Shown piece by piece: positions 9,251 to 46,062 of a DNA stretch of 64,000 nucleotides. How positions within the stretch are numbered: position 1 is the first letter of the stretch; the number at the start of each line of letters is the position of its first letter. Position numbers and translations under genes: made by a program. The stretch comes from Paragordius varius (Eukaryota; Animalia; Nematomorpha). Under the pieces are notes generated by a model. The model made no database searches, was not told the DNA's origin, and was given only the letters and a program-made list of their open reading frames with translations. Where the stretch lies: positions 8,246,001-8,310,000 of the forward strand of contig OZ176050.1 of the NCBI GenBank assembly GCA_964247055.1, given 5' to 3'.

Positions 9251-9291
<41 letters not shown>

Positions 9292-12200: not shown

Positions 12201-14741
12201 TAAAAATATTAAGGTTATTAAGGATGGTTTTTTCGGTAATGACAACGCAGTTATACATGTCAAAATCAATGCGATCCATATAATCATTGAGAATTTATAA
12301 TCAATTTCTGGACGAACACATATATGTTATGCAATTTATATTTATACAAAAATATGTAACATTTTATAAATTTTAATACTTTTCAGGGATTGGAACCGTT
12401 ACGAGAATATAAACAGTTATTAAATACGGCTTGAAATTTCTTAAAACCGCGGTCCTACATGGCTCCATTTTTTTTATAATTTCAATTTATATTTTGGTTT
12501 ATGTAAACATAAAAAGTATCTCATTTATTTTCACGGAATTGTGGCATTTTTAGAGCAAGCTTTAAATTTAGATATGTTGGGTAGAAATTAAAACAATTTT
12601 TGAAACCCTTTTTTTATAAAATATTTTATGCCGAATCCGATACAAATAATTTGTCTTGCAACGTAACCATAAACGGTTCGATCCCAACCCCTGATATATA
12701 TATAATATATTAGATTAAATAAGATAAAAATTCTATTTGAAACGCACCTGTCACATTGTTTTGAAACGGATAAAAAAGGGCAATAATAAGATTGAGAATT
12801 AAAACCATGTAGAAACATAAATTGCTCCATAATCTAACGTGATTGGCAAACCAATAGTATATTGGTTGAGCTAAAATATTAAAAGTAATTTTTTAAAATG
12901 ATAAAGAAATCTAATAAGTTTGGTATAAAATGCTAAGGTGCAATTAGTCACCCTGAAGTCTTTTTTGCCATTTTAATTCTGAGTACAGTTCGGGAATCAT
13001 GAGGAAAAAATCCCCAACTTTTCTTCCTTGTTCATCTTGCTTGGCCTCACGATATACCCGATTTTTTGTTGTTTCCGTAATGTATTCACAAATCGTGGGT
13101 ATTGGAAAAATTATTTGTTCCAATTTCCCATCACTACGGACAATCTAATGACAAATTCAATTTCATCCATGTAAAAAATTATGTGAAAAAAGAGACTCTA
13201 AACTCAGGTAAACAATTGCGACACTCATAACAGCTATGTTTTCTAAAAATATTTTTATAATTTTTTTAAGATATTGAGAAAAATGGAGTATCATATCAAT
13301 AATTTAACAATTGCTTTTTTATTCATTAAATTAAAAATTATTATGTTGATTAAGGCCCAAACGCCAAATTCTAAATTTCTTTATAAGGTTATAGGAATTT
13401 AAATTTTCCAAATACAATTTGTATTTTTAAGGCTCACCATTCGTGTTTGATAGTATGTCTTATGCAATTCTAATATATTTAGCATCAATAATAAAGAAAT
13501 GCCATTTATAACAGAAATTTCCCTATTTGTTTCATTATAACAAATAATACTATGCCACTGTTGTATAAAAATGATCATATAAGGTTTGGTTGTATAATTT
13601 AACCATAATATTATTTTAAAAGATAAATTATAACCTATTTAATTTTCCCTAAAAATAACTTGATTTTTACTTCGATTTGAGCCGTTTTCTTTGCATAAAA
13701 TTCTAAGGCTTCATGTGTTGTCTGATTATGAATCGGGTTGTTGGGATTCAAAATTTTGGCCAAATCGTCGTTAAAACGCGACAGATAAACGGTTAAAATA
13801 TAAATATTGTGACCAACAATCTAAACAATATTATTTTAAGGTTATATCATAAAAATAAGAAAAATATTTAGGGTTAATACTCTCAATAATTATTTATACA
13901 TTTTTTGATAATTTTCTAAAATAAAAAAAATTAAATGTTTACTCGCCGTGTCCTGTAGTTCGACGTGTTAAATATATTATTTTTATTGTTATAATATTAT
14001 ATACTTACCGTTGACTTATCAATGCAATATAAATCATCTTCAGTCGATTTTTCACTGTGAATTTTATTTTGTTCCAAATAAAAAGATGTTATTGTATCAA
14101 GCTATAATAAATTAAGTCCATTTACTATGATATTAAAATTCAAATTAAATAGGATTCTTTCAGAAGTCTCAGTATCATTTCTACTTTCCATAAGCGAAAG
14201 CAATAATTTGACCGCATTGTACTAAAAAATATTGATAATACAGTTAACCTTGATATCCAAACACAGATCCAATCTTTTGGAGGATAAGGGTGTTATATCA
14301 TTTAATATCATACCAATTATAATGTCTATTACATTGGATTCATGTTTTGATATGCAATTCTGTGTGGAAAAAAGTTGAAAAAATACACGTAAAAATATAA
14401 TCAAAAGATTAATACACCTTTAGCTATATTAATTAACTGATTATTTGAATTTAAGGATGGTGTTATTATGTGATATCATTTGATCCACCTAAAATTTGCT
14501 ACAAAATAATCAATACTTCCTATGTTTGGATTCAGTCCAATCCATTATCATGAATTTATTTAAAAATTTTACACCAAATTTTAGGCGGCATAGTAAGTTT
14601 AATTCCATTTATTGTTAAATTGGTGTTATTGAAAACATAATAGGGCCGCTTTATTTTCAAAATTTTCTGTTTGACTCTATAAATGCTACTTTAGTTTAAT
14701 TTAAAATTCGTATAAACGACTGATACCAAAATTGCAAAGTT

Positions 14742-14779
<38 letters not shown>

Positions 14780-17700
14780 GAAATTGATATGTGAAAACCT
14801 CAAGTCAAATAGTTGTGAGGTACTGGAGTGCTAACAAGCACGAAACTAGTCTACTATTAATGAGGGCATTTCACATATCCTTTATATTTTCTATAATTTT
14901 CGATTATCATTATTTCCGGATTTAACAATTGTTATTGCAAAAACTTAATATTGTAATATTAATCACCATAAAATTTGGGCAAGAAGAGGAAATACTATAA
15001 GATTAAAAGATGTTTTATAATCGAAAGTTTTTCAAAATATTTACGATTATTTAGGTCATAATAATCAGTAACAACGAAACCCCCTTTCATCAACTAGGGA
15101 AACCATTTTGATCACTGGCTGAAGAAGCTAGCCTATTTTTAAAAACTATAAAAATATCACATTTACAGATAAATATAAATACTCTCATCAAATAAATTTC
15201 AATCAAATACTAAAACTCTTACTGTAAAAATTAATAAATGCTGAAATCAGAGAGACGTAGCACTACTCATTTGAAAATTACGTAAAACTAAAAATTTAAA
15301 ATCTAAATAAAACAGCCAAATCTCTGCCCTTAAAGATGGACCACCAATAATAAAACCTAAAAAATGTTGAATGATATTTCGTAAATGGTTAATTATATAA
15401 AGTGGATCGCTTTTTTGCTTATGTTTTAGGGATATGTGTATCCATACTCCAGCATATTACATTATAATAGAGCTATTCGTAAAATATGGAAGAAAAAAAT
15501 AAAAAACACTGATATAGCAAACAAAATCAAAACACAAATAACACTACGTCTTAAAATAACCAAGCGAAAATTCAGTGTGGGGAAAGTAAACGGCAAGATA
15601 GGAAGATGCCGCATGGCTTTCCGATGGATGGACAAAATATTGTCCCTTTCTAAATATCCATCCAAAACTGATTTCAAAACACTAACGGTCGTTCTGCAAG
15701 CTTTCAACCAACCAATCAACTGCTATGAGGATTTATAATAAATAAAGGGTTTAAAATTTCGCAATTCCTAAACAAAAATCGAAGAATTTTGCATGAAAAA
15801 AAGATTATAAATAAACTAGATAGGAACATGTTTCATTTAGAGGATTCAATGTTTTAATTAATTATTTTATATTAGATATTTGAAGATAATGACAATAAAA
15901 TGTCATATACGTATTAAACCTGATTTTCAATGCAGGGTCCCTGACAGTATTCAGTTAAAGACGACAAAATCTGACAAATTAATTCGCTGTTATCTTCATT
16001 GATGTACAACCCCAGTAAACCTAAAGTACCAGAAATCGATCCACAAATAGTGTCTAAAAGTTTCAAAGTTTCGCTGACCATATTATAGTTGGTTTTGTTG
16101 TGTTGTGTGCGCAAAAAGTTCTGGAAATTAAGTGAATATTAATGATATATAAGCTATATAAAATTCTTTAAGTGTTAATTGAAAATACCTATTTAAGTTT
16201 AAAATTCTTTAGGTAACTCAATTTTAATTATTTATCGGGCTAATTTTATTAAGGCATTTCGAAATGATTGCAAAATAAAAAGATATTTTATGACAAACAC
16301 CAATATAACGGTTCGATAATTAAATATTAAAAAAAATACTATATTTTAAACTATTTTATTGCAAATTATCACTAAATATGGATATCTGAAATAGTTTTAA
16401 CTATTATTGATAAATTATATCAAAAAATAATAAAAAACTTGTAAATGGATGTTATGATTTTCACAAAGCAATTGAAGAAAACGCAATATTGGTTGCATTA
16501 GGTCTAATTCTGTAAGAATTTTTTTCTCTGTATCAGATGCCCCACTGTCAGAAAATAATCTAGGGTTTTTAACATTGTACTCTAGCGGTTAAAACTTTAT
16601 ATTGTTACCGGTTGTTTGGGATGGATAATACAGATTAACCAAAAAAGAGGTAAATCTATTAGCAGCTAAAATGTCTACTAAATAAATCTGGATTTTGGTA
16701 ACAAATGAAAATAAACTTTCACCTATATGTTATAAAATAAAAATAAATTAAAAAATTGACATTGACACTTTATAGATAATATACTTTGAATGGGTCGATT
16801 ATTAAAATCTTTTATTGCAATTTGGGATGTTTTCTTTGGTTTCACTTGTGTGCTTTTATCGATGTTATCATTCGTAGTGAGAATATTTACCTTTAAAATA
16901 ATTTATCATTCTACTTTAATTTCATTTTGAGCGGATTGTATGTGATGCGTTAGAATCTTAAAAAATGCGTCACATTTTGACGGCTCCTTTGAAAGTATGG
17001 ACGAAAAGGAGGTCTGTTTCATAAAATGTTAGACATAATTAACAATGTAAATTTTAGCGTAATTATTAAATTTTTATTTTTAAATATTTTTGATTCTGGT
17101 TTTTAAACGTATAATATGGCACTCGAGCTCACCAAATAAATTTAACGAGCTGTATTTTTTTCTTGTGGACAGTATTATCGATAATTATGACACTTCGGTT
17201 TAAATATGATATTTAAATCTTGAAGGCATATGTAAATGAATTTAAATACTTTAGATTGGAAACATTAATCGAACTGAAAACTCCGTAAAAGCACGTATTT
17301 TAAGGAAATGTATTAAAATTCTTCTACCCGTTTAAAAAAATAATTATTATCTTACACTGGTAGAAAAGTAATAATAATGAACCAGTTTTTCGAAAAAAAG
17401 GATGAACATAAATTTTAAGGATAAGGTAATTAATAATTAATGCTAAAGTATACTTGTATGACGTCATTACCACCCTCGAGCAAAGAGATTGACAGATCTA
17501 AACATTCCAACAATATTTTTTCGCTCGGATCTTTTATGATAAGGTTAATGATCATTTCAGTGCATCCTTGCTAAAATTAAAGAAAAATGAAAATGTTCTC
17601 TACTTTGTCTAATTTTGCTTGGATTTCTGATAAACTTTCCGTTTCGCTTTTGTTTGTAACATCCAAAGCTAACGATTTCAATTTGTTTCCCTTTATTAGT

Positions 17701-20700
17701 TTTTATAACGAATAATACTTGATTGCTACAAGCAATCATTTCCCTTAATGTCTCCAAAACTTTGACACATAAAACTTCCTCCTTTTCTTCATACAATTTA
17801 ATGGTGTGGTTAATTAACCTTAATTTTAAAATTATGCATAAAGTATATAGAATCAGGCCCATTTTCCTGTATTTAAAAATTATAAACTGGTTATTATTTT
17901 TTTGTTATTAAATATAATAAAAGATATATACAGGAAAAAAAATGTTAATTTTGATTTTGTTTAACAGAGTATGCATAAAATAGAAGGAAAGCTATTATTC
18001 TAAGCCGTAAAAACCGGAGTATTAATGATCCATTTTCGAAGCCTGTGTAAATATCAGAATATGGAGGAAATAAGCGTTCCGGATGATGTAAAACACCGAC
18101 TAGTGAAGCCAAATCCGAAACTATAATTGATTGCCAATCTTCATCAATTTCTTTGCAGGTATCCTAAAAACATAGGCAGAAAGATTGGATTTTAAATGTT
18201 AGTATAAATGAAGCGTAGAGAGTCATCAATTTTTTTAATATCAAAATATAGTGTAAATTATAGATGCTGTTACCTGAAAAATTTGTATAATGTATTTGTA
18301 ATTTTTGTCATTTTCACTAGTTGCGTTAGATTTGGGCTTTATGGAATCTTTCCACATTTTTGTATGCTTGATAACGGTTTGGGCTTGACTAATTATCATT
18401 TCTACTTGGTAACTTAGATCACCGGGAATAAGTACTTTGCGTACCCTTGCTAATATATAATATATATGCGTTATTATATTTACCAAAAACATCTTATCAA
18501 ATTCAAAATAATTGGTCTGATTTTAGGCTCAAAAATTTTCATAATTTTATCGTAAACTTTCTTAAAAGGAAAAATATTGTTTTTAGTAAGTTGTCTATTT
18601 TTAAATTTTTATCATAAATGTATTAATTAACAGTTTTATTTATTATATATTATTTATTTATAACGTGATTAAATGGCAAATATTTATTTAACACTTGGCA
18701 ACACCTTCGTTTCAGTCCTAAGATTCAAAGGTCTTTGGGGACCCCAGGATTGTATAAAATCAAATATTTTTAAAATTATATAACAAACTGAAACCGTTGC
18801 AAAAGTTTGCATTTATATAACACAGTTTCAAAATGTAAAAAAATTTATTTTAAAAATTGATATTACTTTAGATAAACCTCTAGGTAAAAAAATTAGTCAA
18901 CATAATATGTGTGCATTAGATAGATATAAAAATGATATAAATTAAACTACTTTTTCTCTTCTCATCATTGTTAATGTGATTGAAATAAATAATTTTCTTT
19001 ATCCTTAGCGTTAGATTTAATTTTAAAATGGCGTCGAAGTAGTTGAATATAGCATTTTTAATAACCAATTTTATTTAAATATTTGGCTTATTTATATAAT
19101 TTCCATAAATTGGAACAGTTTTTCTCAAAAGTTTTTGAATATCAACTCAAATATAGTCTGGGGTCTTTAGATGCCCTAATTTGAATCAAAGTGTTAATAA
19201 ATGATTAATTATTAGAGTATTATAGTGATATGTTACGAAAAATAAAAATATTATTAATGATTCAGATCGCCATATTACCGTCTTGACCAAGTTATTTAGT
19301 TAGCCATTTTATTGTAATTTTTTGTCCAACGGGTCACCGATTTTTACATTTTAGTTAAATTATAAACATACCAGTTTCACATAAAGATTTGATACACTTC
19401 TTAATATGATATTTATGAGTGCCACTTAATTGTGCGACCTGTGACAATTCACAAATCTTTTCTAGGAGTTGCAGGAAAATTGGTTGATTACTCTAAAAAG
19501 ATAGGCGTAAAATATTATTTTTGGATTAACATTTTTATTAGGTATATTATTATAAGAAATTCTTAATAATTCGTAATTTAATTGTTTTGATAGTATTTTA
19601 TTTAGTTATTAAACAAACTTTGACTTTACCATGCACGCATGCAAATCATCAGTCGAACAATTAAGAATTGAGTTTTGGGAGGAGTAAGGGCTTAAAAAAC
19701 ATTTATGTGATATGGGTATAATTTTTAAGTTCTCCACCGAACCAATTCGCTTTTTCATTTTGGACTCCATAAGAGCCGGAAAATTTGGGATGTCATCACT
19801 ATTGAAGCGTGATAAATGATTTTTCTTCATTATAAGTCGTTTCTTGGAAGACGATGAAAAGATTTCAACATCAACCACTCTTGAATCATTTATAAATACA
19901 TCACATAAAGGCGGGCTTTTGGATAAATGCTGTTTTTTGGTCCCTTTTCGCAGAAATGAATTTTCGTTAAAAAGGTTAAGTGGTTTAGAATGACATGCAA
20001 GATATACAGTACATGCAGATAATTCTTTCTAATTAAAAATTAGTACAGAAATATAACTAGCTCTCTAAACTACGAACGATTTTGGTATAGTTAGGATAAC
20101 TTATATAATCAGATAAATTTTTTTTATATCATTCTAAAAATTATTTAAGCGCTGGGTTTAAAAGATTCTTTTAGGAAAAACTACCTTAATTGACAGGCTT
20201 TGATTGGAAAAGGGCGAGGTGAAAAAGGCATTTATAACATTCATCAATGTGACGCATACGAAATTTTTAGCTTTTTCAAAACGTTTATCATTCGTTTCAT
20301 ACATGAAGGGATGAATAATCTATGATATATTAGGGGGATTATTTACCTGATCCATATCCTCCAAAATATTTTCAAATAATGTCCAAATATGACTGCTTGA
20401 ATAAATTTCTTTAACCTCAATTTCCGTATCAATGTAACAATGGTTTAAAAAGTTGATGTATGCGTCCTTTACCTATTTACAAAATATAGATTCATATCGA
20501 TATTTTTTTTATAAAAAGTTTAATTTTTAAACAACGGGATTTAAATATGAAGTAAACAAAGGTTTCAAAGCATTGTTATCCGTAGATAGCGGCAATGTGC
20601 CATGCTTTAACAAAAATTAAAGGTAATTAATGTTTAAACAAATATTTGCCCTAAATTAATTCTGTATAAGCAAAAGGAAGAAGAGTCTAACCCGTATATT

Positions 20701-23700
20701 ATTATTTCGATGGGGAGAAATGGATGGATTAAATTTCTTTAAGTTTTATATTTACCCTTTAAAACAACAACTTTAAAATTAGTGTTTAAACAGTCCTGAT
20801 GCATCTGTGTTTAACAGAAAATAATAAAATTATTTTGAAAAAATAAGCATGATTCTTGACACAAAAGATACTTTATTTTAAAATGAAAGTAAACTTCAAT
20901 TATGCAATCGGGATGTAACACCATTTTGACTATGTCATCCAATGGCAATAAAGAGTGACATTTGATTTCGGTGAAAGCGTTTTTCCCTTCAGTACAACTT
21001 GCTAATAAACGAACTAAACTGATGTGGTACCACAATGGCTCAAACATAGGATCATTGGGTAATATTTTTGACTTTATTATTAAAAAAATGATAAAATATA
21101 ACTCCAATTCAAACAATTTTTTAGAAAAAATAACACATTATATTTGATTTATATCTTACAAACACAATACCAACCTTTATATATGGCTAAATAAAATCAA
21201 TTAATTTAAAAAGACAATAGGTCATTAAGGTTAACCTGGATCAAAGATACATTCGTTTTTGTAAATGATTTTGCAGAATCAGATTTTAGTGAGTCGCAAG
21301 TTTCCGAATATGTCTTCATTAAATGAACAAACGCATTGAATGCGACGGGTTCATTGTAAAATATCAAAACGTCGTCTCCCACATTATCTAACTGGTAATT
21401 GCAATATTTAATAGAATAATTAATACTTATTAATATTTTATATTCTCGCTTCTAATATGATTAATTGGTAAAGTGCCGTTTATAACTTTATTTAATTAAC
21501 AAACCTATATATATAATTTTCCCTAAAAAGATCTTACAGTGTTTTTTCAAAGTTTAATCTTTTATTAAATCTGTGCAATGGACTAATGTAAATACGCGGT
21601 CAATCGTATCGAAAGTAGGGCATTATTTTTTATTGAAGGTTACACTTAGATATGAAACAGCTCCTCTCTTATTGGTATTTAATAATACCCTTTAGCATAT
21701 GTTTTAATCTAAAGGTGATGATAGAGAGTTACACATTATAAAACTTTACAAATTATATCATGGACAATATGAGTTTTAAAATTTCGATTGAGTTGTATTG
21801 TGGTGTCGATTTCGGAAAAAACGTACAATATTAATGGCTTATATATTTTTAATTCTGCCATACTTGCGTTGTAACTAGATCCTGGCATTTTCTAATGTAT
21901 TGCCCTTCAGCTTTGACAATACATTCCAAAAATTTTAAATATTCTGGGTTTCGTCCATACGTGCTAATGCAATGTATAAAATGTTGAACAATATTATCGG
22001 TTATCTCATTGCAAAGTTCAATGTTGTCCTTAAATATCGATTTTATAGTTTTGGGTTCAAATATCTAAATTTTTACAAAAATATGTCATATTGGGATGTA
22101 AAGATAGATTTATTTAAAAAAATACTTTTATATTCATCAAAAACGTCAAGTGCTGGTACATTAGGCTTTGATTTGTTTTATTGGCTAGGCAAAAGTTTCG
22201 AATAAATGCATGTGCAGTTTTTATAATATCCATCAATTTATTATTTCCCTAATATATATATATATATATATATATATGCGTTTTTAAATCTGTATAAATG
22301 TACTTCATAAATTCATATTTAAGCCATATATAGACATAAACCAATATCTAGCTAGTTTACCAATTGGTTAGCGGTTGTTCAATATTAACGCTAATATAAT
22401 TAATTTTTTTGATAAAATAATTTTCTAATTATGACACCATGTGCGCTCTTAAAAATGTATAAACTATAATAAAATCGATAGTAGAGAGTTCATTATATGG
22501 TAAAATATTTAAATATTTTAGTTTTTAGCTAAAATTAAGAAATACGGTATTTTCGAACATTAAGAAAATGTAACACAAATAAAATTGAAGCGTACTGTTA
22601 TTAGTACTAGGTTTCATAAGGTTTTCACATATTATTAATTGGGGCTTCGTATTTATATTTGGAGGAGCCGTTAAATGACTAACAATTAAATATAAATGCA
22701 ATTTGTCGTAATGATTGAGCAAAACTTGAATATGCGGTATGTTTCAATTTTAACTATCATACTATATTATATGTATATAGCCCAATATATAGCCTTGGAA
22801 AGACGGAAAGTAAAAAAAAACACAGATCTGATAAACAGTGTTTGACAACCACAATACCTGTTGCAATAATTGAATCTAGTTTTAAAAATGCTTTTTAGTG
22901 GTATTTTTTCACTAAAATTTCTTCAAATAACAGATCTACATGATCTTCTTAAAAGACAAAAATTTAATATTGATTCCAAATGATTCATAATCGACATTAT
23001 ACAAAGAATTGGAATAACCAAAAGTTTTAAAAAACCAGTTTATACCAATTTTATTCCTTAACTAAATGTAGAACTGGTTTAATAATGAAAAGACAGAACG
23101 GAAACCGGTTCCAATCCTTTCAATTCTGGTCTCAAGGGAGTTAGATCTCTTAAAAATAAAGTTTAATCCTTTTAACGATATTGAAAATATAATATTTGTC
23201 GATAATAATAAACAACAATTTTAATTATAATTATTGTACCTTATTACAGGGTATTTTAAGCAGATCAAGCACCACTTCATGGGCGCCTAAATTTCTTAAC
23301 AAACGTTGATCTGTTTTGGAGGACATAAGAGTTCCAGAAACATCCTTAGCGCATATTAAAACAAAATGGTTCAGAATTTCCAAAACGGTAGCATAATTTT
23401 CGTTCTCATCACTCAACAAATTGATGCTGCTAAATACATCCCCAGATTGGTACTATTATATATAAATTAAATTACAACTTTAATAAAACAATATAAAAAT
23501 ATTATATTAGGTTTGAATAAAACACTTACATCTTTTTCTGTCCCGTGTTTTATTTGTAATCGGGGTAGAATAGTGGATGATAACTTTTTACGCTTATATT
23601 CTTTTTGTATGTTTTTTATATCAGTACCAATATCAACCGTGGTATTCGTTGCACATTTTTTATTATCATTTATTTTCAATCGCTTGTGATATAATGCGTC

Positions 23701-26700
23701 ATCATCGGATGATATGTACACCGGAGATAACTGAGACTCAATATTAATTAACACACCATTATCCTCACTATGGTCCAATTTATCTGTTATAAGAGTGTTC
23801 TTTTCATCCTTAGTTAGCACCGTATTTTTTGGATTGCAATCATCAACATCATCATAATATTTTATCCAAAGCTCAGCTTTTTCCACCAGCAATTTCAATT
23901 CATCCAATTCCTGCTTCAATTGTTTGTAATTGTTAACTTCGGTTGGGGAAATCAATAATTGCACCTTGAAAAAATTAATCAATCTTGTTATTATACTTGT
24001 TTAAGCGAATCTATAAATTCCGTTTTTTGACTAAAGTACCGGAATAAAAGTCGTAATGAAGCTGAAATCAAGGGCCCATAATCATGCATAACATAATAAA
24101 GGATAAGTCTCAATAATGACAATTTTTTGTTGTTGCTTACCGTCAAACTAATGTTGTACATAAAATTTTATAATCGAACATTTTTATATAATTTTATAAT
24201 AATTCTGTTATATATGTATAATAATGGGATAACATTACTCATCGAAAAGTGGCTCCATAATTTTCCAAGTATCACCTATATTTATAAAATGTATACCATT
24301 CTTGGCAGACATTTCGTTAGAATCTGCCGCGGAGTTATTTTTTGTAAGATACATATCCAATTTAATAGGTAATATGTCATTTTTAAATTTAGCAAGATAA
24401 CAAGATATACGGTAATCCATCTGCATATCCATAAGAAACTACAAAAAACATTTATAAAAAATATATGTTAAAACAACCATTAAACACCAAATTTTGGAAT
24501 TTAACATTTTAATTTGCCCAAAGTTGTTTGGCGCTCGGTGCATGAATCCGTGCATGCGACCCCTTAAATTTTTTAAAAAATGAGTGATTTTTTATGTATT
24601 ATTTAAAATAATAATTTTTAAAGACCTATTTTTTTGAAATAAAATAATTTACTAAAACCCGGCGCCCCTTCAACTATGGCGCCCGGAGCATCAGCGCCTC
24701 TTTCTCCCCTCTAGCTACGCCTTTGATGAAATGGTCATATATTTCCATAAACATTTTCCTCATATAATGCAAAAATTAAATAATTATAAATCAAAATTTC
24801 TACAAAATGTTTAATAATATAACATTGGAGGAGCTTCATTTTACGAGTAGTGTTGGATCTAACAGTCATAAATATTTTAAACAAAATTTGTAATAAAATG
24901 ACATTTTAATATGATTTATTTTTTTAGTGATAAAAATTTTAAATAACTTGGAAAATATCGATTAGATATAATTTAGTTTCCATAATTAGATTATCCCTTC
25001 CACTGGAAGTTGCCAATGCTTGACTATACTTATAATCACAATTAATAGCGGTGAGTGATTTTCTTTTCCCATTTTTAAGCGTATACAATGTTTCTTTTGT
25101 CGCAGTTGATTTGTTAGAATGGAAAAACCTTGCTAACATGATCCAAAGTTTATTTTCGCCTAGCATAAATTTGTTTTATATTAAATGGTCAATCGTTAAT
25201 TAAAAATAATAAAAAATGTAAATTTTTCATAGAGTATACCTAAAGTTAAATTCGTTCTATCATTGAGGCCAGGTATTACGCCAGAAGATTGGTCCAAAAG
25301 CTGTAATATTCTATCCGTCATATTAATCAAACTGGTGAATGAATAAAATCCGAAGTAAACGAGACTTTTGGATAATTTCATTACCTATATATATGTAATA
25401 AAATAGTAACATAAAATTTACTTCAAAAGTCAATCGATTACGTTCATCATCTTCAAATGGCTGCGAAAGAGAAAATGTTTCCTTAAAATAATTTTCAATG
25501 AAATTTAAAATAGGAACGAATTTTTCGGATTCTATTTGGGTTTTATCTGCTAAACATATTTCATCATATCTAAACAAGAAATGAATTTTATACAGTAATA
25601 TATGTGTGATGAATACATATTTAATATTTTAAAACTTCTTAACAATGTTATAAATATTGGTAAAAAGACTTATCTTAAATCAATCATAATTCATATATGG
25701 ATAAAAATATTTATTTATATGTCTACTTTTTGGTGTCTGTACTGTTCATTTTATAAGCATCTGACCACAAACGGGCATATTTAATTGGTGTAATCACTTC
25801 TTGGGGTTCACGATCAATATGAATGTGTAATAAAAGTCGGATAAACGCTGCACGCAACAAATAAGAAAGTTGCTGATTTGTAATGCAACTAAAAAATTTA
25901 AAATATGATAACAACCACACCAATGATGTAGTAAACTATTTGCCTTGGAGAGGTCAAAAGCTAATTAATATAATTAAAGCAAATTAATTATATTACCAAT
26001 ATTTACATCTAGATTTCAACAATATCGTAATAATATTATGGTATCTTAGTCAAATATAAAAACTATAAATCTATACAAATAAGTCGAAAATATATTTGTA
26101 CAAAACAATAAAAAACGAAACAAATAAAGACATGGACAATGTAAATGAGTTTTATATATTGATTTCTTGTTAAACGGGCTAATAATGGTAATAAAGGATC
26201 GAGTTAGATGTTTGCTTCATAGAGGACGAAAGGGAAATCCATGATTTTAATAATAAATATTCTATCTATAAAATAATTATTGGATGTTTATACCTAAAAA
26301 ACATTATGATCTTGACCAATATTAATTTATAACGGTAAGATTGAATACATTTTTGACTTACTGTAAATAATTATTTAATGAATTGGAAATCGATAGAATT
26401 CAACCACAAAATCATAAAATTTAATTAATAGTAAATTTAATGTGATTTATATAAAATAAAAATGTTACTTCAATAATAATTGGATGGAAAATTGTGTGGC
26501 TAAATCATCGATTGCCATGTATTGGCGATCCAAACACAAGTTTGCAAACAGCAATAATTGATACCTGTAATATCTTCAATATGTTAAAAAAACAAGTACT
26601 TTAATGTCTTTGCATCTTCTTTATTAGTTAAGGCATCATTGTTAAGATCGATTAACGATTTGGAGATGATGTTTCCATTGTTCCAATACAGATAAACCTT

Positions 26701-29700
26701 AAAAAATATTTTTAACAACACTCTTTTAGTAATGAATTAATATAATAATATTTTAAAATCTAGGACCAATGATTATACAGTAAAAATTTATGAAAGGTAA
26801 AGGGCATTTGTAAAATACTGTCTTTATTATATCTACTAACTTTAATATTGATCATAAAAATATAAACTGAAAAAAATAGTTTTTATCGTGATCATTGTAA
26901 AGAAAGGTAAAAATTATAGAATGAAGTCAAAAAATTCGATAAAATTAATATAAAGATCTACTTGGGATTGTTTTTCACATTCACGAGACTCAAAACCAGT
27001 TTCTATAAGAAGCATGCGACGTTTTGGATTTAATAAACATCTGCAAATCAATTCTTGGATCACTGGAATCGCAATTTGATTCGATACACAGAGATCAGAT
27101 AAATATTCTAGATATCTATCAAATTTTCATTATCATAATTTAGACAAACACATATTATTAATAGTTTTTAAAAAACATACCTGCATTCCCTTTTGGTTTG
27201 TAGTAAATTAACAAAGGTTTCAATTTCTTGATATTTGATATGTTTTTCCAATAATTTACGATTATTATGAAGTAGGGCTGTAATTGTTTCTTCCGCCAAT
27301 ACATCATAACCTATTTGTTTTTGCATGAATGCAAAGTGACGTGCAATATATTCCTATGCACAACAAAAAATTTTTCAATAAAGTTAGCGAAAACGGCTAC
27401 TTTTACTTAAACGCTAGTACAAAATATATTTAATAGCAAATTTTCCGAGCCGACTTAAGCAGTGATTAATGCATGCATAAACTTATAATCTTTTAGGGTT
27501 AAAATAAATTTTAGCGTATGAATTACTAAATTACCTAAAAAAATTATTTTTATTAAAAAATTAAATGGCATCCAGTAAACTCTGGTACTTTACCCAAAAC
27601 ATGTTGAAAAAATGAATTTTTTTATCATTATTGATATTACTTGGTTTTTTCGGTAGTTCAAAAAAGATAATTTGAGAGATCTATAACACAATCTAAAAAG
27701 CTGTCGTATATGTGAATATTTTGGATCATTTAATTCTTCCAGTTTTATAAGATTAGAATTTGTGGATAAAGACTCGAATGGAGCCTTCAAAACAGCAAAA
27801 ATCTATATTAAAAAATGTAAATTGATAAAATAAACAGTTAACATTGTATAATTTTCATAACATTAGGAATGACTTTGATTAACCTCCTTAATTATATTAA
27901 ATTTATTTTAAAATGGATTCATAAAATTACAGTAGCCATAAGGAATTTTTTCAAAGCGTCTAAACTAATTGACTCATGCTTATCGTTGTCTTTTTTCCCC
28001 AAGCCCTAGTTTGTCAAATACACAATCGTTTGACTATATTTCTTTACAAAAAAGGGAGATCATTAGGATAGGGGGCAATATGGTATTTTCAAATAAAATA
28101 ATGACCAAAAAAAAGTCTGTTAACTTAGCAAATAAATTTTTTCAAAACCTTTAAAAAATAAAAAATAATCTGAATTACCTCTTTTAAAACGTCCTGCTCT
28201 CGCAACAGCTTCTGGCGGTCTCTTACGGGGTCTTCAACCACCAAATCTAATGCATCCTTATTTTTAATCTGTTGTTGATTATGTGCCAAAAAATATATGA
28301 GTTCAGTCAGAAGCTTTATACCTTTACTAAATAATATGTATAAAAAATTGTGTTATATAGTAAAATTTAATGATTTTTTGGAGTCATAAAAAAGCAATAT
28401 TTAACGGATACTATCAAGTGATATAAGCTTTATATATAAAGTTTATATTTAGTATTTTAATATATCATTCATAATTTTCGATAACTCGGGATATTTTATA
28501 TCTTTATAATTAAAAATTTTTAATGGTTGTACATCGTAAACAAGGAATTCAACTTTGAGCCAATATTTTTTGATTTATATCAAATATATGGATACATTCC
28601 GCAATTCGAGTCATAAGTTAAGAAAAATATATGTTAACAAATTTAATTTCGATATGTTTCGTTAAAAGCGAGATTCAAAGTGTGAGCTAAAATTTTAGGC
28701 CCTTTTTATAACCGGTTCCTTTTTGGTTTGATTTTGACAATTTATAATACGTTTATAATCGTTTTATAATACAATTTTATGTTCTTTAACAAAATATCTA
28801 TTTTTTTCTATGTCTAACAACGCCTTCATTACACAAGTATACAATAAAGTTGAGTAATTATATAGTTTAATTTCAGAATTTACGCTGTTTTCTGACTATT
28901 TTAAAATTTGATGGTTTTACTTTACATATCGATTAAGGTAGAAAGGTGGTGAAAGTCATAACACATGTGGATGTGTTTTAATATTTAAATACAACCAAAT
29001 GTGCGAAAAAATGCGATTTTACCGAATGCGGATAGGCTAATAATTTTGTTGGATTTTAACCCAATGATTGATTTTAATTATTTTATTGGTTATTAAACCA
29101 TATATAATGCTAAAACATTTATATTTGAGATGCCCTTATAGTACAAATTAACTTTTTTCCATAATTTCAAAGTACGATTAATTATTAACCGTTTTTCATT
29201 CTGTGTGAAGGTATCCTGTTGAAGAGCATATGCCAACGATTTTAAACCATGACTCACATCATTGACAAAATCCAGATCCCTCACTTCATCGGGCGAAACG
29301 TAAATTAACAAAAAGGCTTCTTTGTCATCTTTAGTTTTGTTAGCTCCTAACTATTAAATAATATTTGTAACTTTAATTAAATGGTATAAAAAATTAAAAA
29401 TAGATATGTATTGAATCAACGATTCAGATTTCGAAGAAAGCAGAATAATACAAAAATGCAACAGTACATCCTCATTTAATTCACAGCGTGTGAAATTTGC
29501 AGTTAAAAAAACTAAAATCTGGGAGTCAGGTAGAAAAGGTATCATTAGGTCCCTAGGTTCGAGAAAGCATCACATCTTTTCCATAATAAATATAAAAATA
29601 ATATTTCGTGTATAGCGGACCGCTTCAGTCCCATGACCCCGATTGTCGGAAACTACATGGGTCATTATCTGCATCATGAACCTTTTTTTAAAGATTTATT

Positions 29701-32700
29701 TAAATAGATATTGACGAAAATTTAAACAATATTTATTTATTTAAATAATATATGATAAATATAAAAAATGATATTTTTTTGTTGTTTTTGGCTCCCTATG
29801 AGGGTCTTATAAAACGGAAAGTTGTTTTCTACATTGAATGATCCGCTATGCAACAAAATTTAGCTATTTCTCCAGGTACTTACAATTTTTAGAAATTAGA
29901 GAGAATTATATATATATATATACATATATACCTTATAACGCTCATGAGCCTTTTATCCACGAAGTTTCTACTGAAATCTGCTTTGGCAAGTTATAACAAA
30001 ATATTTTTACATATGTTTAAAATTACATTTTTTAAAGCGGCTGTTTAAATGGGTATCTTTTTTTTGAGCCAACAACCTAATCTTTATATCTTGACAATAA
30101 TGCCCGAAAATCCTTTCGCTCATATTTTAATAAATAGCTTTGCACCAATTTTTTTCTAAATAGGTTTTTTATATACGACCATTTAAGTTTACACCCGGAT
30201 ATAACTTATTTTAAACACAACTTTGGTTCAGACATGATTCAAAAAACACACCAAAATTTATGCCATCTGCCAAAAAATCTATCGGTTGTCCCATCCATAC
30301 TTCTGAAAATTGGATGGCTCTCATTGATATAACAGCACTAAATTCAAATATGACCATTAATCTATATAAAAAGAAGATGTATATATTTTATTATAAAAGT
30401 TATTTTACATGTTTAACTCTACTCAATAAATTGAAAACTTTGACGGTGTAGATATATGTGATTTGCCATAACTGTTTCAATCAATGAATAATTTAAAAAA
30501 AGGTGAAAATGGGTTAATTATATTTATGGAATGCGTGTCGCGTGTTTACATTAATGTGGTCAATATACTCTAAATAGGCCTACTATGGTGCAGCGTTTAC
30601 TTTAGTAAGCCTAGTATTAGCCGTCAGAAAAGAGTATATTCATAAAATTATGGCGTTTTAGATTAAGGAACTAACCAACATTTGTAATTGTTTACGAAAA
30701 ATTTTTATAATAAAACTATGTTAACCTGTCAAAATTATATTACAAAATTAAAAAAATATTTAATTCTGAGAAAATCAAAGATTAATTTGTTATTATGGTT
30801 TTTTGGAGCCAAATAACAGGAATTACCTTGAATAACATATGGGCATTAGCATCTGTTTCATTTGAGGGGAATGGAATATTTGTACTAAATATCCATAGCC
30901 GTGATTCCAAATGTTGCATTCTGACATAAGCTGAGCTAAAATATCAAAAATATCATAAAGTATAATTGTTCCTGAATAAGCCAACAATTGCATAATAATA
31001 AAAGTTAATAGTGATAGGAAATAAAAACTCATCATGGTTTTTAACCTTTCCCATATAATGGATGCAAAAATGAAAATAAAATTATACAAAATTTGTGGAT
31101 AGCAAAAAGCATTTAAGCTTGCTCGTTATTAAAAGCTTGTCAAATTTAAAATCTTTAGATCATAAAATCATATTTATTCCAAAATAGTTATATAGATGTA
31201 TACTTGGAAATCAGGGTATCATCGTGTAAAATTTTGGTGGTAGGATGTAATTCAAACAATGTGTCGGATTTATTGCCATCGTTAGTAACAGATAAAAAGT
31301 GGCAAAATTTATCTTGCTTGGTATCAGTGTCATTATCCGCCTTAGAAAGTAAAAAAAATAGTTTAGACCAGGGGTGTCCAAATATTTTACAAGGCCGCAA
31401 GAAATTTCACAAAATTAATACAGAATCTAAGTAAATTAGTTTTTTAAAAAGATTTCGAATAGATCTTATCGAATTTTGGTTAAGAACTAGCATAAAATGT
31501 TAAAATAAATGATAGTTTGTGCGGTTTTACGTTTGAAATCTAACAAATTTTTTATAAATGCTCATAGATTTCGACTGCAGCTGAATTTTTTGATCCAAAA
31601 ATGCGGCCCGCAAATCCATTTGTGTTAGATGCCCCTGGCTCAGGAGTACCTTTTTGCTTTTTTTATTAAAGGGTAAGGTCTTAAATTGTCTCAGGACATG
31701 TGAAGGTTTTAACACTACCTAGAGACAATGATGATAAAATTGCGTATTTTTATTCGAATTCTGCCATTCCACACCGGGCCCTACATACTATACGATCGCG
31801 CCTTCTGCCTCAAAAAGTAATAAGGATTTAAAATTTACTAGTATTGTTAAGTATTTTCCCGTTGCCAAATGCCGAAATCTAAAAAGACTGTTCCAGCGTC
31901 CGGCGCATGTGAGAAAAGGGTTTTCGGTTGCAACCTATCAAGAAAAATTTAAGAGATTTTCAAGCGATTATATATTAATCAAATATCGGACAAACACAAA
32001 ATGTGAGAAATTTATTGAATTTTATGCCACATATGCTTAATTATAATAGATAGTACAAATATTTTTTATATATTTGTTTGAATACCAAATTACAACATAT
32101 TGCAAAATTTCCTATGGCTAATTAAGATTTTATTATAAAAAATGCCTTATTTGTTGGATGCGTTTATATTTATTAATAAAATTATAGAAAGAGTGTTCTA
32201 TTTCCTCGTTTCAATTAATAATTATTTCAAGTTTATTGGAATTATAATTTTGTTAAAATATAATTTGATTTATTTTTTAGTTGTTATTAGCACCCTTGTT
32301 ACAAAGAACCTATTAGATCAGCTCTATGAATGGCCTTTGTATTGAGATCATTAAGTTGGTTCTATATTTTTTTATAGTGTATTTGTGATATTGGATTGGG
32401 AGATACAATTAATAGCAGATGATTTATATCAACTCCCGATCTTTTTTGCAATGAATAAATGTTGTTTTAACGCAATATTGGGTTTTTAACTTGAAAATAT
32501 ATTTAACAAAAAACTATCTTATTGAATTTCCAATATCATTGCCACATTTGAAATTAACTTTTGCATGTCTAATCTACGTTTTCCCCTATATCATTTTTTT
32601 GAATATATACGGGTAATTTTTGGGCATTTTATTTGTCGTCTCTAATAAAATCCCCACCATCTATTGTCTAGACAGGTTATTTGTAACTTAAATCAACTGT

Positions 32701-35700
32701 TAAACACTAGTATTTATCTAATCTCTACAAAATATTGAGTAATATATATACCCAAGGTGACCAGATTTTTTGAAGGAAAAAGCGGGACAAATCTAAGAAA
32801 GGGAAGGGCATGGGGGGGGGGATACAACCAAAAAATTTTAAACAAAAATTTATTGTAATATTTCATTATTTTTAGCACAAATACAATATAAATATAAAAA
32901 AATATTTTATTTTTTGGTATATTTTTTATTTTAGTGAATGCGTTTAGCAGATTGTCATCATTTTTTAAAATATTGTGGAAGTCTTCACAAGAATTAGTCA
33001 AATTATATTTGAGAGATAAAATGGCCTTTAAAGTTTCAACATTTAAATTTGATTTCTCCGATGTCCACACCTGATTTACTTTGGAAAAAACGCGCTCAGT
33101 AGCAGCGTTAATTCCAGGTAAAGATATTGCGAATTCCACAATTTTTAAAATATTATTGTATGATGAAATATTTCTAACCATTTCTTTTCTTTCTGTTGTC
33201 CATAATTTAAGTTTTTCGTTATTAATATTTTTTAACTAATGATACTTCAGAAAAAGGATCATTTTCTGAAAGATTACATTTTGGGAATTTTTGGGAGATG
33301 CAGATGTAATCAAATGATTTTTGAACATCGTACCAATTAAATTCAGGTTTTGATGTTATCGAATGAAAATCATCAATTTCATCGAATTGCTTCCAAATAA
33401 TCTTTACAGTTGGTATTAAACATTATTATATGGTGGAGGATATTTTAGCGATTTATTAAGCCTTGTTTTTCTAAATTATTAATAATATTGCGGATGGTTA
33501 ATGGTATAAAATTATTTTCTAACCTTTCTTGACATTGGAATTTTAAGTTACTAACTTCATTGGCTACTTCGATTGCCGAAATTTTGTCACCTTCTATCAA
33601 TTTAATAACACTAGACAACAAATTTTAACTTTTTTTAACTGCCATTCTTGTAAATTTAAAATTTATTTCATTAAAGTACATAATTAGTATATCTGAAAAG
33701 AAAATTGGTCTAGCATGGAAGAACTTTTTTATATTAGAGTTTATCGATAATTTTTGGCCCCGATTTAACATTAAACTCAAAATTTCGAAAATTAAAAGTT
33801 TTAGATATGAAGCCATGTATTTTATATCATTCGAAAGAGCGCAAAAAACTGCATCTTTTAAATGGTAGTAAGTCATTTAAATCCATCGGATGTAAAAGTT
33901 ATTTGGATTTAAATGGTCGAAATTTTCAATCCATAAATAAGTCAAGAATTTTCACAGACAAACTAATTTGAAAATATAAATTATTTTAATATAATTATTA
34001 GGGTTATATTAATATTTAATTTTAAAAAAATGTTTGAAAAAGCTTTTGGTTTGCTTTTTTAATAAAAATTATTATTATCATAAATATTTTCCCTAGTGGA
34101 TATTAAAATGCATAGTTATAACTGTAAATTTTATACATAATGGATATAAAAGATCAAAAATACCTTAAACTTTGTTTTTATCTTTAAAATTTCGAAATTA
34201 TCAGCCTTATAAAGAAAATAAATTAATATTGATGAGATGGTAATTTTTAAAAAACAAAAAACTTAAAAATGGTTGTTTTGAGTGATATAAAAGCAATAAA
34301 AAAATGTTTTATTCAAAAAAACTTTCTTGTGTTATTTTTTTTGGACATTCATCACCATCTAAACAAAGTTTGAGCTATTTTCATCCATTAGTTTTAAAAA
34401 TATAATAATTAAAAAAAATGCTCTCGCTTCGCGCGTTTGTCGCTCTTTGTGTCCAATAATAACTGTCGATGTAATACATATTAGTATACATTTTATAGAG
34501 TTTTTATTACTCTTTCGAATGATATATTACAAATGGGCATTACTTGTATTTTCAAAGAAAAATATTTTTTAGTAAAATTTTGATAAAGAGAGCGCATAAT
34601 CAAAAAAATCAAATTATACAAAATTCTTCCAACGAGTTATATTTTTTATTTCAGATTTACTGTTAAAATGATACTAAATATCAGAAAATTCAAAAAACTC
34701 GAGTGGCAGAAAAATTTGTTGTCCAGTGTAACATTTTGAAAGAGAGAAGCTTGATTATATAAGAACTCTAACCATATTTTTAAAGAATAACTTTCAAAAA
34801 ACTTTTCCAAAGTTGTAGGACATTTGTCCCGTGATAAAAAATAGGATTTTAAAGGATCATACATTTTAAAATTCTTTCGATAGCTGAGAGCTAACCAACG
34901 AGTTTTACAATATCCAAGCATTTTTTGATATTGAACTTCTGCATTTTCACAGAATTCCTTTAGCGCTTCAAAGCGTACCGTCTATATTAAAATAGGAATA
35001 TATTTTAACAACTACATTTTTCACATCTAGGGGTAACAAATCAGCAGTTTGAATAGCTTTGTGTATTATACGCGCTGCACACCCAACGCCAATAATGTTT
35101 TGATTAAGATTATCTGCTATATTTTGAAAAATATTTTTTGTCCCTCCTTCCTTTTCCACCGAAGTTCGTATTGGTGTTGTCAGCGCAATATGCGATGTTT
35201 TTGTCTTTAAAATTATTTTTTTCTAGAATATTTATTATTTAGTAAAAAGGCATTGTATACAATGGCTTCAGCCTTTGTACGGGCACACGTGATTTTTTAT
35301 TGAATAAGGTGCGAATAACCTGTGAGATGCAATCCATAGATCTAAAGGATAGATTGTGGTTAACGGCGTGGAAAGATAAAACGCCTTCGGCTAGTGCCAA
35401 ATTCTTTTCTTCCTCTCCAAAAGCGGTTTTTCGATAAAAATCCCTCATTTTGTAAGATGATGCCGCCATATCTAAACATTTTTTATGTTTCTGTGATTCC
35501 ATATGCTTTGTAATTTCATGCTTGCCGCCATGTGCTAGGGGGAATTCCCCCCATAAAAAAATTCAACAAATGATTCATTCTTCGTTTTTTTTATAAAAGG
35601 AAATTCTTATATTTATTCATCGTTTAATTTACAACCTCTTTTTATACTCATATTACTAATATTAGTATAAAAAATATTATATTACCTTAGTTTTCTGGCG

Positions 35701-37511
35701 TAAACGTATAAGCTACCGATTTGTGGTATTAATTTGTCTTTTTGATAATCTTGACAGTAGGAGTAGGAAGTGTATAATCATATGATATAAATTCGAAAAA
35801 AAATAAATATTTTTAATTTAAAAATAAAAAATTTTAATTTAAAATTGAAATAGATTTTAAAAATAACTAATGATAAAATATAAAACGGATAAAAAATAAA
35901 TTTTTTATAAAAATTTAAATGTATTTTAAAAAAATTTTTTTATGATCGTGAAAAAGCGGGACATTTCAAAGACGCGGGACAAAGTGTGAAAAAGCGGGAC
36001 GTCTGGTTACCCTATATATACCAGATATATATAACTCATATCATGTAAAGGCAAAAAAACTGCTTGAAGCGTAAAAGTTATTGCACATTTTTTGAAGGTA
36101 GCATTTAAGAAATCCGTTAAATATAATAGATGGTTGTCCTTTATGTATCTTACATATAATTATTGTCATTCTAATAATATGCGAAAATAAAAATTTAATT
36201 CATTATGACCAACTTCAATTTCCCACAGAGCCTTTGAACTGGTGGCCGAAGTAGCAGTAACTCTTCCCGTCGAGCGTAAGAATACATTAAATTGATTGGA
36301 CGAAGTTTCGTCACAGGTGAGAAATTTTTGTTGTTCTGAGTGAAATAATCGGATAACATCGCCCTTTATTATTAATATAGATTTGGAAAAACTTAAATGC
36401 GTTAAAAAAAATATATATAAACTACTATTAATTACATATTGCGTACCCCCTTTATCGTGTTATTGATATTTTCTTTTTGTTGTAAGTAAAGAATTAATTT
36501 CCAATTAGTGTTTGATTTAATGGCATTTATCTACAATAAAAAATAATATATAACTTTATTTATTCTTTTTTAATTAAAAGAATATAAAACTTCTTTGCAC
36601 AAATTGTGATCTGGTAAATCGCAAGGACTAACGTGCATTTCCTGATTTGCAGAAACAGATACGAATATAACTTTATCTCCAATAACAACCTAGTTTGCGT
36701 ATGATTATAAAATAAAATTAGTAATAAAATTATTGATTTAAATAATCATATAAGATACATTGTCTCCCAAACTTCTTAATTTATAGTAGGGTTGGATAAA
36801 AAACCATGAGCCCTCGTTTCCATCGCAATCTAAAGAAATGCGCATAGCGTTTCTTTCTACTATGGCTGGGAGGCGTTTGTTTACGGTAACATACTTATTG
36901 CTCATAACGTGCAATAACTAAAAAATTTAATTTATAATAATATAATATTTAATTGAATGTTTAAAGATTATCAGATAATAATAATAATAGTAATGAGATA
37001 TCGATTACAAACCTGAACAGAGTTGCCATATTGAACAATTGTTCCTAAACTTTTTATTTTTTCTTTATCATTCTGTATAATTTCCATATCTGCCGCTTGC
37101 TTTAATAAATCATAATATATAAATATTAATGTTATTATAGTACACTTAAAAATATTAGGAAATAAAAATTGAATTATACTTTTAATTTATTTGTGAGTAT
37201 TTTGTCAGAATTTAGAATATTAGAAAGAAAGCCATTTCCAGTTTCATGTATTTTATAATACTGTTTTTGAGCTGCATATCGGTTTAGAGGAAGAACTTTA
37301 AAAGTAAATGCTATGCACATTAAATATATAATAAATACTTCTGATATTATTTGGCTTAATATCAATTTTATCAAAACAGTAATTTAGGGTGCAGCGATCA
37401 TCGATCATTCTAAAATTATATTTAAATTTACCCCACAGCCGTCATATATCCAAAAATATTTTCATCAAATGACAAAAGAATAGTATCTCCAATATGCAAA
37501 AATGTACTCAT
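8420..37511 (-). CDS. ITPR: Inositol 1,4,5-trisphosphate receptor, about 2980 aa, about 60 exons
   Basis: Exons 5'->3': 37432-37511, 37339-37409, 37180-37310, 37013-37099, 36759-36917, 36591-36689, 36447-36530, 36214-36363, 31839-31934, 31204-31340, 30827-30935, 29190-29350, 28179-28326, 27641-27802, 27181-27353, 26962-27115, 26600-26697, 26469-26573, 25727-25888, 25422-25569, 25240-25384, 24948-25159, 24239-24438, 23997-24147, 23530-23964, 23240-23452, 22126-22248, 21864-22064, 21236-21391, 20895-21071, 20347-20472, 20185-20319, 19630-20028, 19372-19492, 18274-18449, 18015-18163, 17719-17818, 17604-17690, 17454-17570, 16915-17013, 16785-16890, 16609-16722 (uncertain), 16439-16581, 15920-16120, 14249-14359, 14126-14221, 14009-14101, 13671-13820, 12952-13144, 12748-12870, 12135-12307, 11839-12003, 11352-11649, 11161-11271, 10847-10954, 10592-10773, 9674-9839, 9437-9597, 8541-8705, 8420-8467 (uncertain; otherwise the stop is at 8514). 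Total 8943 nt, in frame. Hallmarks: MSTFLHIGD start, [10 protein letters not shown]3 ligands ([22 protein letters not shown]), [12 protein letters not shown], filter [11 protein letters not shown]6 [29 protein letters not shown]. Confidence 0.97.
12384..12693. mobile_element. Old hAT-type MITE in ITPR intron 50
   Basis: Ends CAGGGATTGGAACCGTT / CAGGGGTTGGGATCGAACCGTT; no TSD preserved. A related end lies near 23103-23118. Confidence 0.55.
18688..19197 (-). mobile_element. Diverged MITE copy in ITPR intron 34
   Basis: TTAACACTTGG.. and ..GAATCAAAGTGTTAA ends; internal AAAATGGCGTCGAAGTAG shared with 45222-45240. Confidence 0.75.
24520..24726. mobile_element. GC-rich MITE-like remnant in ITPR intron 22
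   Basis: Repeated GGCGCCC motifs ending in CTAGCTACGCC, resembling hAT-type non-autonomous termini; the left end was not found. Confidence 0.4.
31369..31637. mobile_element. Old hAT-type MITE in ITPR intron 9
   Basis: TIRs CAGGGGTGTCCAAA / CAGGGGCATCTAAC with internal GGCCGC motifs; no TSD preserved. Confidence 0.6.
32753..36014 (-). mobile_element. hAT DNA transposon with a decayed transposase, in ITPR intron 8
   Basis: TIRs CAAGGTGACCAGA / TAGGGTAACCAGA; perfect 8-bp TSD TATATACC (32745-32752 and 36015-36022); subterminal AAAAGCGGGACA repeats. Transposase remnants: BED-like [35 protein letters not shown]. Frameshifts and stops are present. Confidence 0.92.
33609..34728. mobile_element. 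CACTA/CMC-like non-autonomous element nested in the hAT transposase
   Basis: 18-bp TIRs CACTAGACAACAAATTTT / CACTGGACAACAAATTTT and a 3-bp TSD TAA (33606-33608 and 34729-34731). Removing it restores the transposase reading [14 protein letters not shown]. Confidence 0.82.
37410..37431 (-). other. 22-nt GT-AG intron (ITPR intron 1), the shortest of a tiny-intron class
   Basis: GTAAATTTAAATATAATTTTAG. Removal joins TAVG|MIDDRC (canonical TLG|LVDDRC); retention gives an immediate TAA. Confidence 0.88.
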
Positions 37512-37766: not shown

Positions 37767-38174
37767 ATCCAAATAAAGCAAACATCTGAATTTAAAATCA
37801 CTATGTAAGGGGAATTTTTTATTCGAGCATTATTTATATTTAATTGTCGGTTTGGAAGGAAAAAAATTTATATGCGAAAATACAATTTTAATTTTTAAAA
37901 TATGAATATGCCAATCGTATAGAAAAATATAAAATTTGGCCCAATTTATTAAATATTATGTTATTCAAATTATCAATCGGTCTGGGTTATGCAAAACTAC
38001 CCTCTACATCAGTGGTAAACACGAAATAATTATAAAGGACCTCAAAATTATCTTGTCATCGACCAGATAATACCGATAAAAATTTTATAGCTGCTTGAGA
38101 AAAAGCACTGGGTCTTCATGGGACCCGTGAGGCAGGGTTGAGTGTCCTCGCACTACACAATAAAAAATATCCTG

Positions 38175-38177
<3 letters not shown>

Positions 38178-38222
<45 letters not shown>
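38178..38222. repeat. (TA)n microsatellite; others at about 7287-7303, 9253-9287, 14744-14778, 22252-22277 and 44719-44750
   Basis: Seen directly in the sequence. Confidence 0.95.
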
Positions 38223-45423: not shown

Positions 45424-46062
45424 ATAAGCTGCATTTATCGGTTCATATTACTCTACCTTAAATATTATAAAACACTATTGTTAGAACCAAACTCAGAGTG
45501 TGGGGAGTTGGAAACAATACCGGTTGGTTCCCAATTTTAATCAAACCAGGATACAATGCTTATTCTGAATTGCTGAATGTTGTAGTTGTAAATCCAATTA
45601 CATTCCTCACTCATAAAACTGTTAATCAAACTTAATTCATTTAAGCGTTTTTCAGTAATAAAAATTTATAACTCCCCCCATGAAAGATGATACCCATAAT
45701 ATCAAAAAATGTTTATATCGACGCTTAACAAAAAGCGTTTTTAATCACCACCATCCTCTATAAACTGTTAAAGGCATAAATAGTGGAGGAAAAGAGAGAG
45801 ATTATAATACTTGCTCTTCAATGATTCCAAAATATCTCAACTAAAATTAATAATTTTATAAGTTTTCATTGAGTGCCAGATATTTGTCTTATTTTTCGTC
45901 AAAATAGAAAATAAACCTAAAATGGAAAATCGGTTAATTAATTTTATTCACCGCCTCCTAGGAATGTGGGAAGTGCTAGATTGTAGTTTTTTAATCCTTA
46001 AAATCTTAGTTTTTTCATAAATTCTCTTAAAATAATTGCCATTTATCATTGTATAATTTAAA

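Follow-up and report, generated by a model that had tools for sequence, protein, structure and literature searches.

Here we describe a class of predicted ultra-short introns in the gene for the inositol trisphosphate (IP3) receptor, ITPR, of the horsehair worm Paragordius varius (Nematomorpha). The gene lies on the minus strand of a 64,000-nt stretch of contig OZ176050.1 (hereafter the window, whose positions are used throughout unless another contig is named), and its reading frame is interrupted by short segments that begin with GT and end with AG. Judged from the sequence, these segments are very probably genuine U2-type GT-AG spliceosomal introns, forming an ultra-short class of 22-37 nt within a single functional ITPR gene of a bilaterian. 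An earlier note on this DNA had listed 12 such introns in ITPR, and by spliced alignment with full-length receptors from four phyla we recovered 11 of them at the exact bases.

The hairworm ITPR gene

The gene extends from a start codon at 37511 down to 8538. Spliced alignment with owl ITPR1 as the reference scores 4597 and divides it into 56 exons with 55 introns; the alignment spans residues 4-2717 of the 2744 in the reference, at 46.8% identity across 2538 columns. Open segments along the minus strand from 37511 to about 8538 encode unmistakable IP3-receptor peptides, which are collinear with full-length receptors from the N-terminal ligand-binding region through RIH_assoc to the end of the channel. 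Once the GT-AG-bounded segments are set aside, about 2,630 codons can be read without a stop or frameshift. Pfam matches in the gene are to Ins145_P3_rec and RIH_assoc, and the PDB matches of its single exons are to ITPR1, 2 and 3 only. The whole genome contains a single ITPR locus; a second RIH_assoc locus, on contig C5, is probably RyR.

The longest ITPR intron (31935-36213, minus strand, 4279 nt) was recovered with all four references and holds the remnant of a hAT transposase at 32717-33235 (Dimer_Tnp_hAT, E=2.8e-5, above the curated cut-off). The coexistence of ultra-short introns with kilobase-long introns bearing transposable elements, as stated in the earlier note, is thereby borne out, and because long introns, one of them with a hAT remnant, stand beside the micro-introns, the genome cannot be described as compacted. 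The G+C content of the window is 27% throughout.

Spliced alignment and controls

The gene was modelled with our own protein-to-genome spliced aligner, which admits GT-AG introns only, of at least 18 nt, with a flat intron penalty, affine gaps and stop-free exons, and which was blind to the claimed intron sites. As references we used the full-length IP3 receptors of barn owl (P0079), the whipworm Trichuris (P0146), an acanthocephalan (P0126) and a mite (P0129), all obtained by exhaustive protein search with a conserved 74-aa ITPR exon. Homology searches were run exon by exon, and exons were joined only within the alignment script.

The joining of open frames was tried as an intron criterion by itself and dropped as unspecific: at a 28-codon threshold, 162 GT..AG candidates of 18-45 nt join open frames on the gene strand vs 66 on the opposite strand. 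Since frame-joining pairs are so common on the opposite strand as well, a test by homology was required. Pfam searches with single flanking exons proved too insensitive for it, the ITPR families being matched by 2 of 20 pieces. In the spliced alignment, a ban on introns shorter than 45 nt lowered the score by 168-330, and replacement of GT-AG by composition-matched decoy dinucleotides gave scores of 2901-3251 as compared with 4597. Even with the decoys the aligner still tends to skip the same spots, so the interruptions of the ITPR frame are real whatever bounds them. Null alignments, using the reversed protein or the opposite strand, scored 52-54.

Support for individual micro-introns

On the coding strand, each of the 12 claimed ITPR segments starts with GT and ends with AG, each shifts the frame or holds an in-frame stop, and deletion of any one of them fuses two open frames. 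All sites given in this section are on the minus strand. The four references agree on eight segments: 37410-37431 (22 nt, phase 2), 37311-37338 (28 nt, phase 1), 26574-26599 (26 nt, phase 2), 25385-25421 (37 nt, phase 0), 23965-23996 (32 nt, phase 0), 16891-16914 (24 nt, phase 0, two in-frame stops), 14222-14248 (27 nt, phase 0, in-frame stop) and 14102-14125 (24 nt, phase 0, in-frame stop). When the flanking exons were aligned separately (anchored alignment), the residues at their ends were adjacent, or had one split-codon residue between them, at the first five of these sites, at 14222-14248 and at 17571-17603.

The two introns nearest the start codon are tied together by the spacing of PDB matches, which is exact: matched positions 29 and 59 leave 29 residues between them, which 2+1+23+1+2 residues across the 22- and 28-nt introns fill without remainder. 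At the former, the exon ends map to positions two residues apart in the reference, and the split codon fills the gap; the latter is contiguous in two of the four anchored alignments. Single exons compared with PDB sequences by phmmer abut at ITPR1 865|866 across 25385-25421, at 1099|1100 across 23965-23996 and at 2088|2089 across 14222-14248, where the local score gain is 35-65. For 26574-26599 the exons are contiguous with owl ITPR1, and the local gain is 30 and 12 in two references and 0 in two. The upstream exon end at 14102-14125 is firm at reference residue 2112, and the intron is used locally by two of the four references. A further segment, 20320-20346 (27 nt, phase 0, in-frame stop), was chosen with three of the four references at a local gain of 13-34; its upstream exon end is firm and its downstream exon starts in a variable region. 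On this evidence of alignment, 37410-37431, 37311-37338, 25385-25421, 23965-23996, 14222-14248, 20320-20346, 26574-26599 and 14102-14125 are firm predictions.

Three other segments are predicted with moderate confidence; they fall in variable regions, and the calls there depend on the continuity of the frame and on the global chain of exons. Two references, together with a third that gives a 4-nt variant (17567-17603), select 17571-17603 (33 nt, phase 0, in-frame stops), and it is contiguous in two of the four anchored alignments. The 28-nt segment 17691-17718 (phase 0) was chosen with one reference of four; its upstream end is firm at reference residue 1681, its downstream exon lies in a variable linker, and frame continuity speaks for it. 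At 16891-16914 the unanimity of the global models goes with weak local homology (gain 0-3).

The remaining segment, the 27-nt 16582-16608, which the earlier note had itself called only probable, was selected by no reference. Two of them pair the acceptor at 16582 with a donor at 16784, one prefers a 51-nt rival intron at 16545-16595, and there is no local score difference between the options. Conversely, a candidate 23-nt GT-AG intron (23453-23475, phase 0) that was absent from the earlier note joins frames of 175 and 73 codons, and its acceptor is used by one reference. The chance of 163 open codons at the local base composition is 6e-7, and local alignment found no homology support on the upstream side; we consider 23453-23475 a likely further micro-intron. 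Altogether, ITPR is predicted to have at least 8 micro-introns, and probably 11 to 13.

The 163-codon exon 23476-23964 includes about 90 residues, acidic and rich in serine, that form a lineage-specific insertion. None of the four reference proteins has an equivalent, and the aligner tends to treat the insertion as an intron.

Properties of the micro-intron class

The 11 micro-introns of the model (22, 24, 24, 26, 27, 27, 28, 28, 32, 33 and 37 nt) make up 20% of the 55 ITPR introns and fall into eight of 22-28 nt and three of 32-37 nt. They are separated by a gap from the other 44, all of at least 51 nt, of which 14 measure 51-110 nt and the rest 131 to 4279 nt; the median of all 55 is 189 nt. 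Their occurrence after reference residues 31 to 2112 places them along the whole gene, beyond its 5' end alone, and no clustering was detected along ITPR (three adjacent pairs vs two expected). Eight of the 11 are in phase 0.

Sequence signals within the class are short. The donor reads GTA in 10 of the 11 (p=3e-4), with no extended consensus and no G at +5. At position -12 an A is found in 9 of 11 (p=0.003, before correction for about a dozen positions tested) vs 22% in longer introns, and at -11 in 7 of 11; the longer introns have 22-33% A at -12/-11 (small sample). Position -3 is T or A, and positions -5 and -6 are mostly T. G+C content rises from 18.8% in the micro-introns through 24.8% in the longer introns to 33.2% in the exons. 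Five micro-introns are divisible by three in length, and every one of these contains an in-frame stop. Retention of a micro-intron would always bring in a stop or a frameshift, so that unspliced transcripts would be non-productive.

Splicing machinery and a possible route of removal

The genome encodes a full-length U1 small nuclear RNA (snRNA; 124 bits) with ACUUACCUG at nt 3-11 near its 5' end, the canonical sequence for 5' splice-site recognition, and a full-length U2 snRNA (178 bits) with GUAGUA at nt 34-39, the canonical sequence for branch-point recognition. Nothing suggests unusual splice-site recognition machinery. With these genes present, the proposal made previously, of a spliceosome able to define very short introns, appears reasonable.

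We propose that ordinary intron-definition splicing would remove the micro-introns. U1 would pair with a minimal GUA 5' site, U2 would pair with A-rich sequence some 11-12 nt before the AG, and the 3' AG would be preceded by a short U-rich stretch. Only about 10-25 nt would separate the 5' site from the putative branch point.

Both snRNAs have multiple matches in the genome. U2 gave 46, more than 20 of them within about 270 kb of contig 3 (257000-528000), where the scores fall off from 178 to 38 bits, and U1 gave 17, mostly clustered on contig 6. These clusters look like arrays of snRNA genes and pseudogenes.

Short introns in other genes

Other genes, located by Pfam six-frame matches, were checked for micro-introns. 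One gene for a CCT chaperonin subunit, on contig 2, is interrupted in the region of the conserved ATP-binding motif by a GT-AG intron of 36 nt (9804720-9804755, plus strand) that is in frame and contains two stops. The introns of the other CCT genes checked are about 60 nt or more. Within the window, a PSME4-like proteasome activator gene (46000-62287, minus strand) has HEAT_PSME4_mid on five exons; between the exons that match, the introns measure 600-800 nt and micro-introns are absent. Given the 36-nt CCT intron beside mostly ordinary CCT and PSME4 introns, the short class appears to be real in other genes too, yet a minority.

Alternative explanations

An unlikely alternative accepts the class as real but holds that its weak members (17691-17718, 17571-17603, 16891-16914, 16582-16608 and 23453-23475) are miscalled, belong to longer introns that skip mini-exons, or are partly retained to lower expression. 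Local score gains at the weak sites are 0-13, the references disagree there, proposing 17567-17603, 17571-17673, 16582-16784 and 16545-16595, and ultra-short introns of microsporidia are reported to splice inefficiently (PMC13644364). Against this, long open frames, improbable by chance at 8.4% stops per codon, would be interrupted if the mini-exons were skipped, and 16891-16914 is kept in all four global models.

It is very improbable that the locus is a decaying pseudogene or a faulty assembly, in which the segments would be insertions or errors that resemble introns. Although an AT-rich genome yields GT..AG pairs that join frames by chance, such as the 66 on the opposite strand, every break in the roughly 2,630 codons is GT-AG-bounded and lies where the four-reference alignment is contiguous, and random insertions would not all give back contiguous residues on removal. 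The far worse fit of the decoy dinucleotides, the enrichment of GTA at donors and the lack of any other ITPR locus speak in the same direction.

Removal by a non-spliceosomal route, such as somatic DNA elimination or other RNA processing, is the most remote of these explanations: it has no direct support, and although introns this small leave less than the usual room between 5' site and branch point, the GT-AG termini with their GTA donor resemble those of the longer ITPR introns, canonical U1 and U2 are present, and dicyemids, myxobolids and ciliates remove GT-AG introns of the same small size by conventional splicing (PMC13644364).

Several points weigh against our preferred interpretation, a genuine class of ultra-short spliceosomal introns. 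Homology contributes little at three of the sites, which are in variable regions, and 16582-16608 is ambiguous with respect to the 51-nt alternative. The statistics of the splice signals come from 11 introns. Most of the CCT and PSME4 introns checked are ordinary, which makes the short class a minority. Finally, no protein of the same species covering ITPR was found: word searches with the 165-aa frame 23470-23964 and with a conserved 67-aa exon returned nothing above 76% identity.

Mitochondrial contig and genome setting

The mitochondrial contig (C44, 15,693 nt) contains inverted repeats with arms of 208, 140, 138, 131, 92 and 80 nt and 95-100% complementarity, most of which fall within long open frames as read with the mitochondrial code. 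In Nematomorpha, the protein-coding genes of the mitochondrion have been described as containing long perfect inverted repeats (PMC6649704). AGA codons align with Ser or Gly and not with Arg, and CGN codons align with Arg; this invertebrate mitochondrial code excludes cnidarians, and hence myxozoans. Together, the coding palindromes and the code point to Nematomorpha. The same contig also carries a tandem array of a palindromic unit of about 50 nt (approximately 6750-7450). The 44 contigs of the assembly add up to 110.6 Mb, roughly half of the 200-300 Mb of published hairworm assemblies; a smaller, unpublished species or a partial assembly may account for the difference.

Comparison with known ultra-short introns

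In a survey from September 2026 that covered 51 animal genomes, introns shorter than 30 nt, which had earlier been held absent from animals, turned up only in Myxobolidae and Dicyema, and animal ultra-short introns were associated with a parasitic life, a small body and a compact genome (PMC13644364). The earlier note had placed the ITPR introns below the usual minimum for most animals, and this agrees with a literature floor of about 30 nt to which Dicyemida and Myxobolidae are the only published exceptions (PMC13644364). We found no report of ultra-short introns in the literature on hairworms or Nematomorpha and introns, and introns are nowhere discussed in the searchable hairworm genome papers. 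Horsehair worms are probably the third animal lineage, independent of the other two, to have spliceosomal introns shorter than 30 nt, and the first in Ecdysozoa, with these introns as a discrete minority class in a repeat-rich genome that has kilobase introns.

Dicyema japonicum is likewise a parasitic bilaterian with GT-AG introns well below 30 nt, a GTa 5' site, a weak polypyrimidine tract and some A residues before the AG (PMC13644364). In the hairworm ITPR, the counterparts of these signals are GTA at 10 of 11 donors and the A enrichment at -12/-11, which resembles the A residues of weak conservation described in the micro-introns of dicyemids and myxobolids. Unlike in the hairworm, the short class is the norm in the compact genome of Dicyema, whereas in ITPR it comprises 11 of 55 introns, among others that reach 4.3 kb and bear transposon remnants. 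The lineages also differ, the mitochondrial features here pointing to Nematomorpha. The myxobolids Henneguya, Thelohanellus and Myxobolus have introns with a median of 22-27 nt between conserved exons and canonical branch-point recognition by U2 (PMC13644364). They are, however, cnidarians with reduced genomes, in contrast to the invertebrate mitochondrial code and the minority status of micro-introns in the hairworm. In Dicyemida and Myxobolidae the short class dominates the introns of a compact genome, with a median below 30 nt; ITPR, with its median of 189 nt, does not follow this pattern.

Outside animals, ciliates (Paramecium, Stentor) and nucleomorphs resemble the hairworm in having GT-AG introns of 15-33 nt and a conventional spliceosome, but they are unicellular and essentially all of their introns are tiny. 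In ciliates, retention of the tiny introns leads to premature stops. Nematodes and parasitic flatworms share with the hairworm an ecdysozoan or parasitic setting and a small intron class beside long introns. Their small introns have modes of about 35-50 nt, the class lying mostly above about 35-40 nt, in contrast to the 22-28 nt of 8 of the 11 hairworm micro-introns.

If the proposed class is genuine, extreme intron shortening would not be a by-product of genome compaction, and the capacity to splice 22-nt introns would be separated from the shrinkage of all introns. The size class would now extend to a large, muscular, neuron-bearing ecdysozoan parasite with a non-compact genome, where it occurs in a 56-exon gene with kilobase introns, and ITPR would offer a system in which short and long introns can be compared inside one transcript. 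There may also be a practical consequence. Aligners and gene finders with a minimum intron length near or above the sizes of micro-introns would mis-model such genes. Standard gene finders and BUSCO-type assessments may thus break hairworm genes at micro-introns, inflating the gene loss reported for the phylum; BUSCO completeness in hairworm genome papers is low (71.6% for Gordionus).

Other features of the window

The earlier note had also placed a 24-nt intron in a PAGR1-like gene. At 62420-62443 on the plus strand, two open frames of a small gene are separated by 24 nt that begin with GT, end with AG and contain an in-frame stop; this segment is a candidate for an intron that joins them. 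The surrounding exons have no family match in Pfam or the protein Atlas, so the PAGR1-like identity gained no support there.

Repeats are found in and around ITPR. An open frame with Gypsy-type RNase H and integrase zinc finger (38841-39707, plus strand) lies immediately upstream of the ITPR start, and (TA)n or (ATATAC)-type microsatellites, which translate as IYIYIY, recur in and around its introns (38100-38220, 14710-14800, 9230-9300 and 22250-22300). At the other end of the gene, a testican/SPOCK-like gene (4103-6450, plus strand) encodes Kazal, SPARC calcium-binding EF-hand and thyroglobulin type-1 domains, each on a separate exon.

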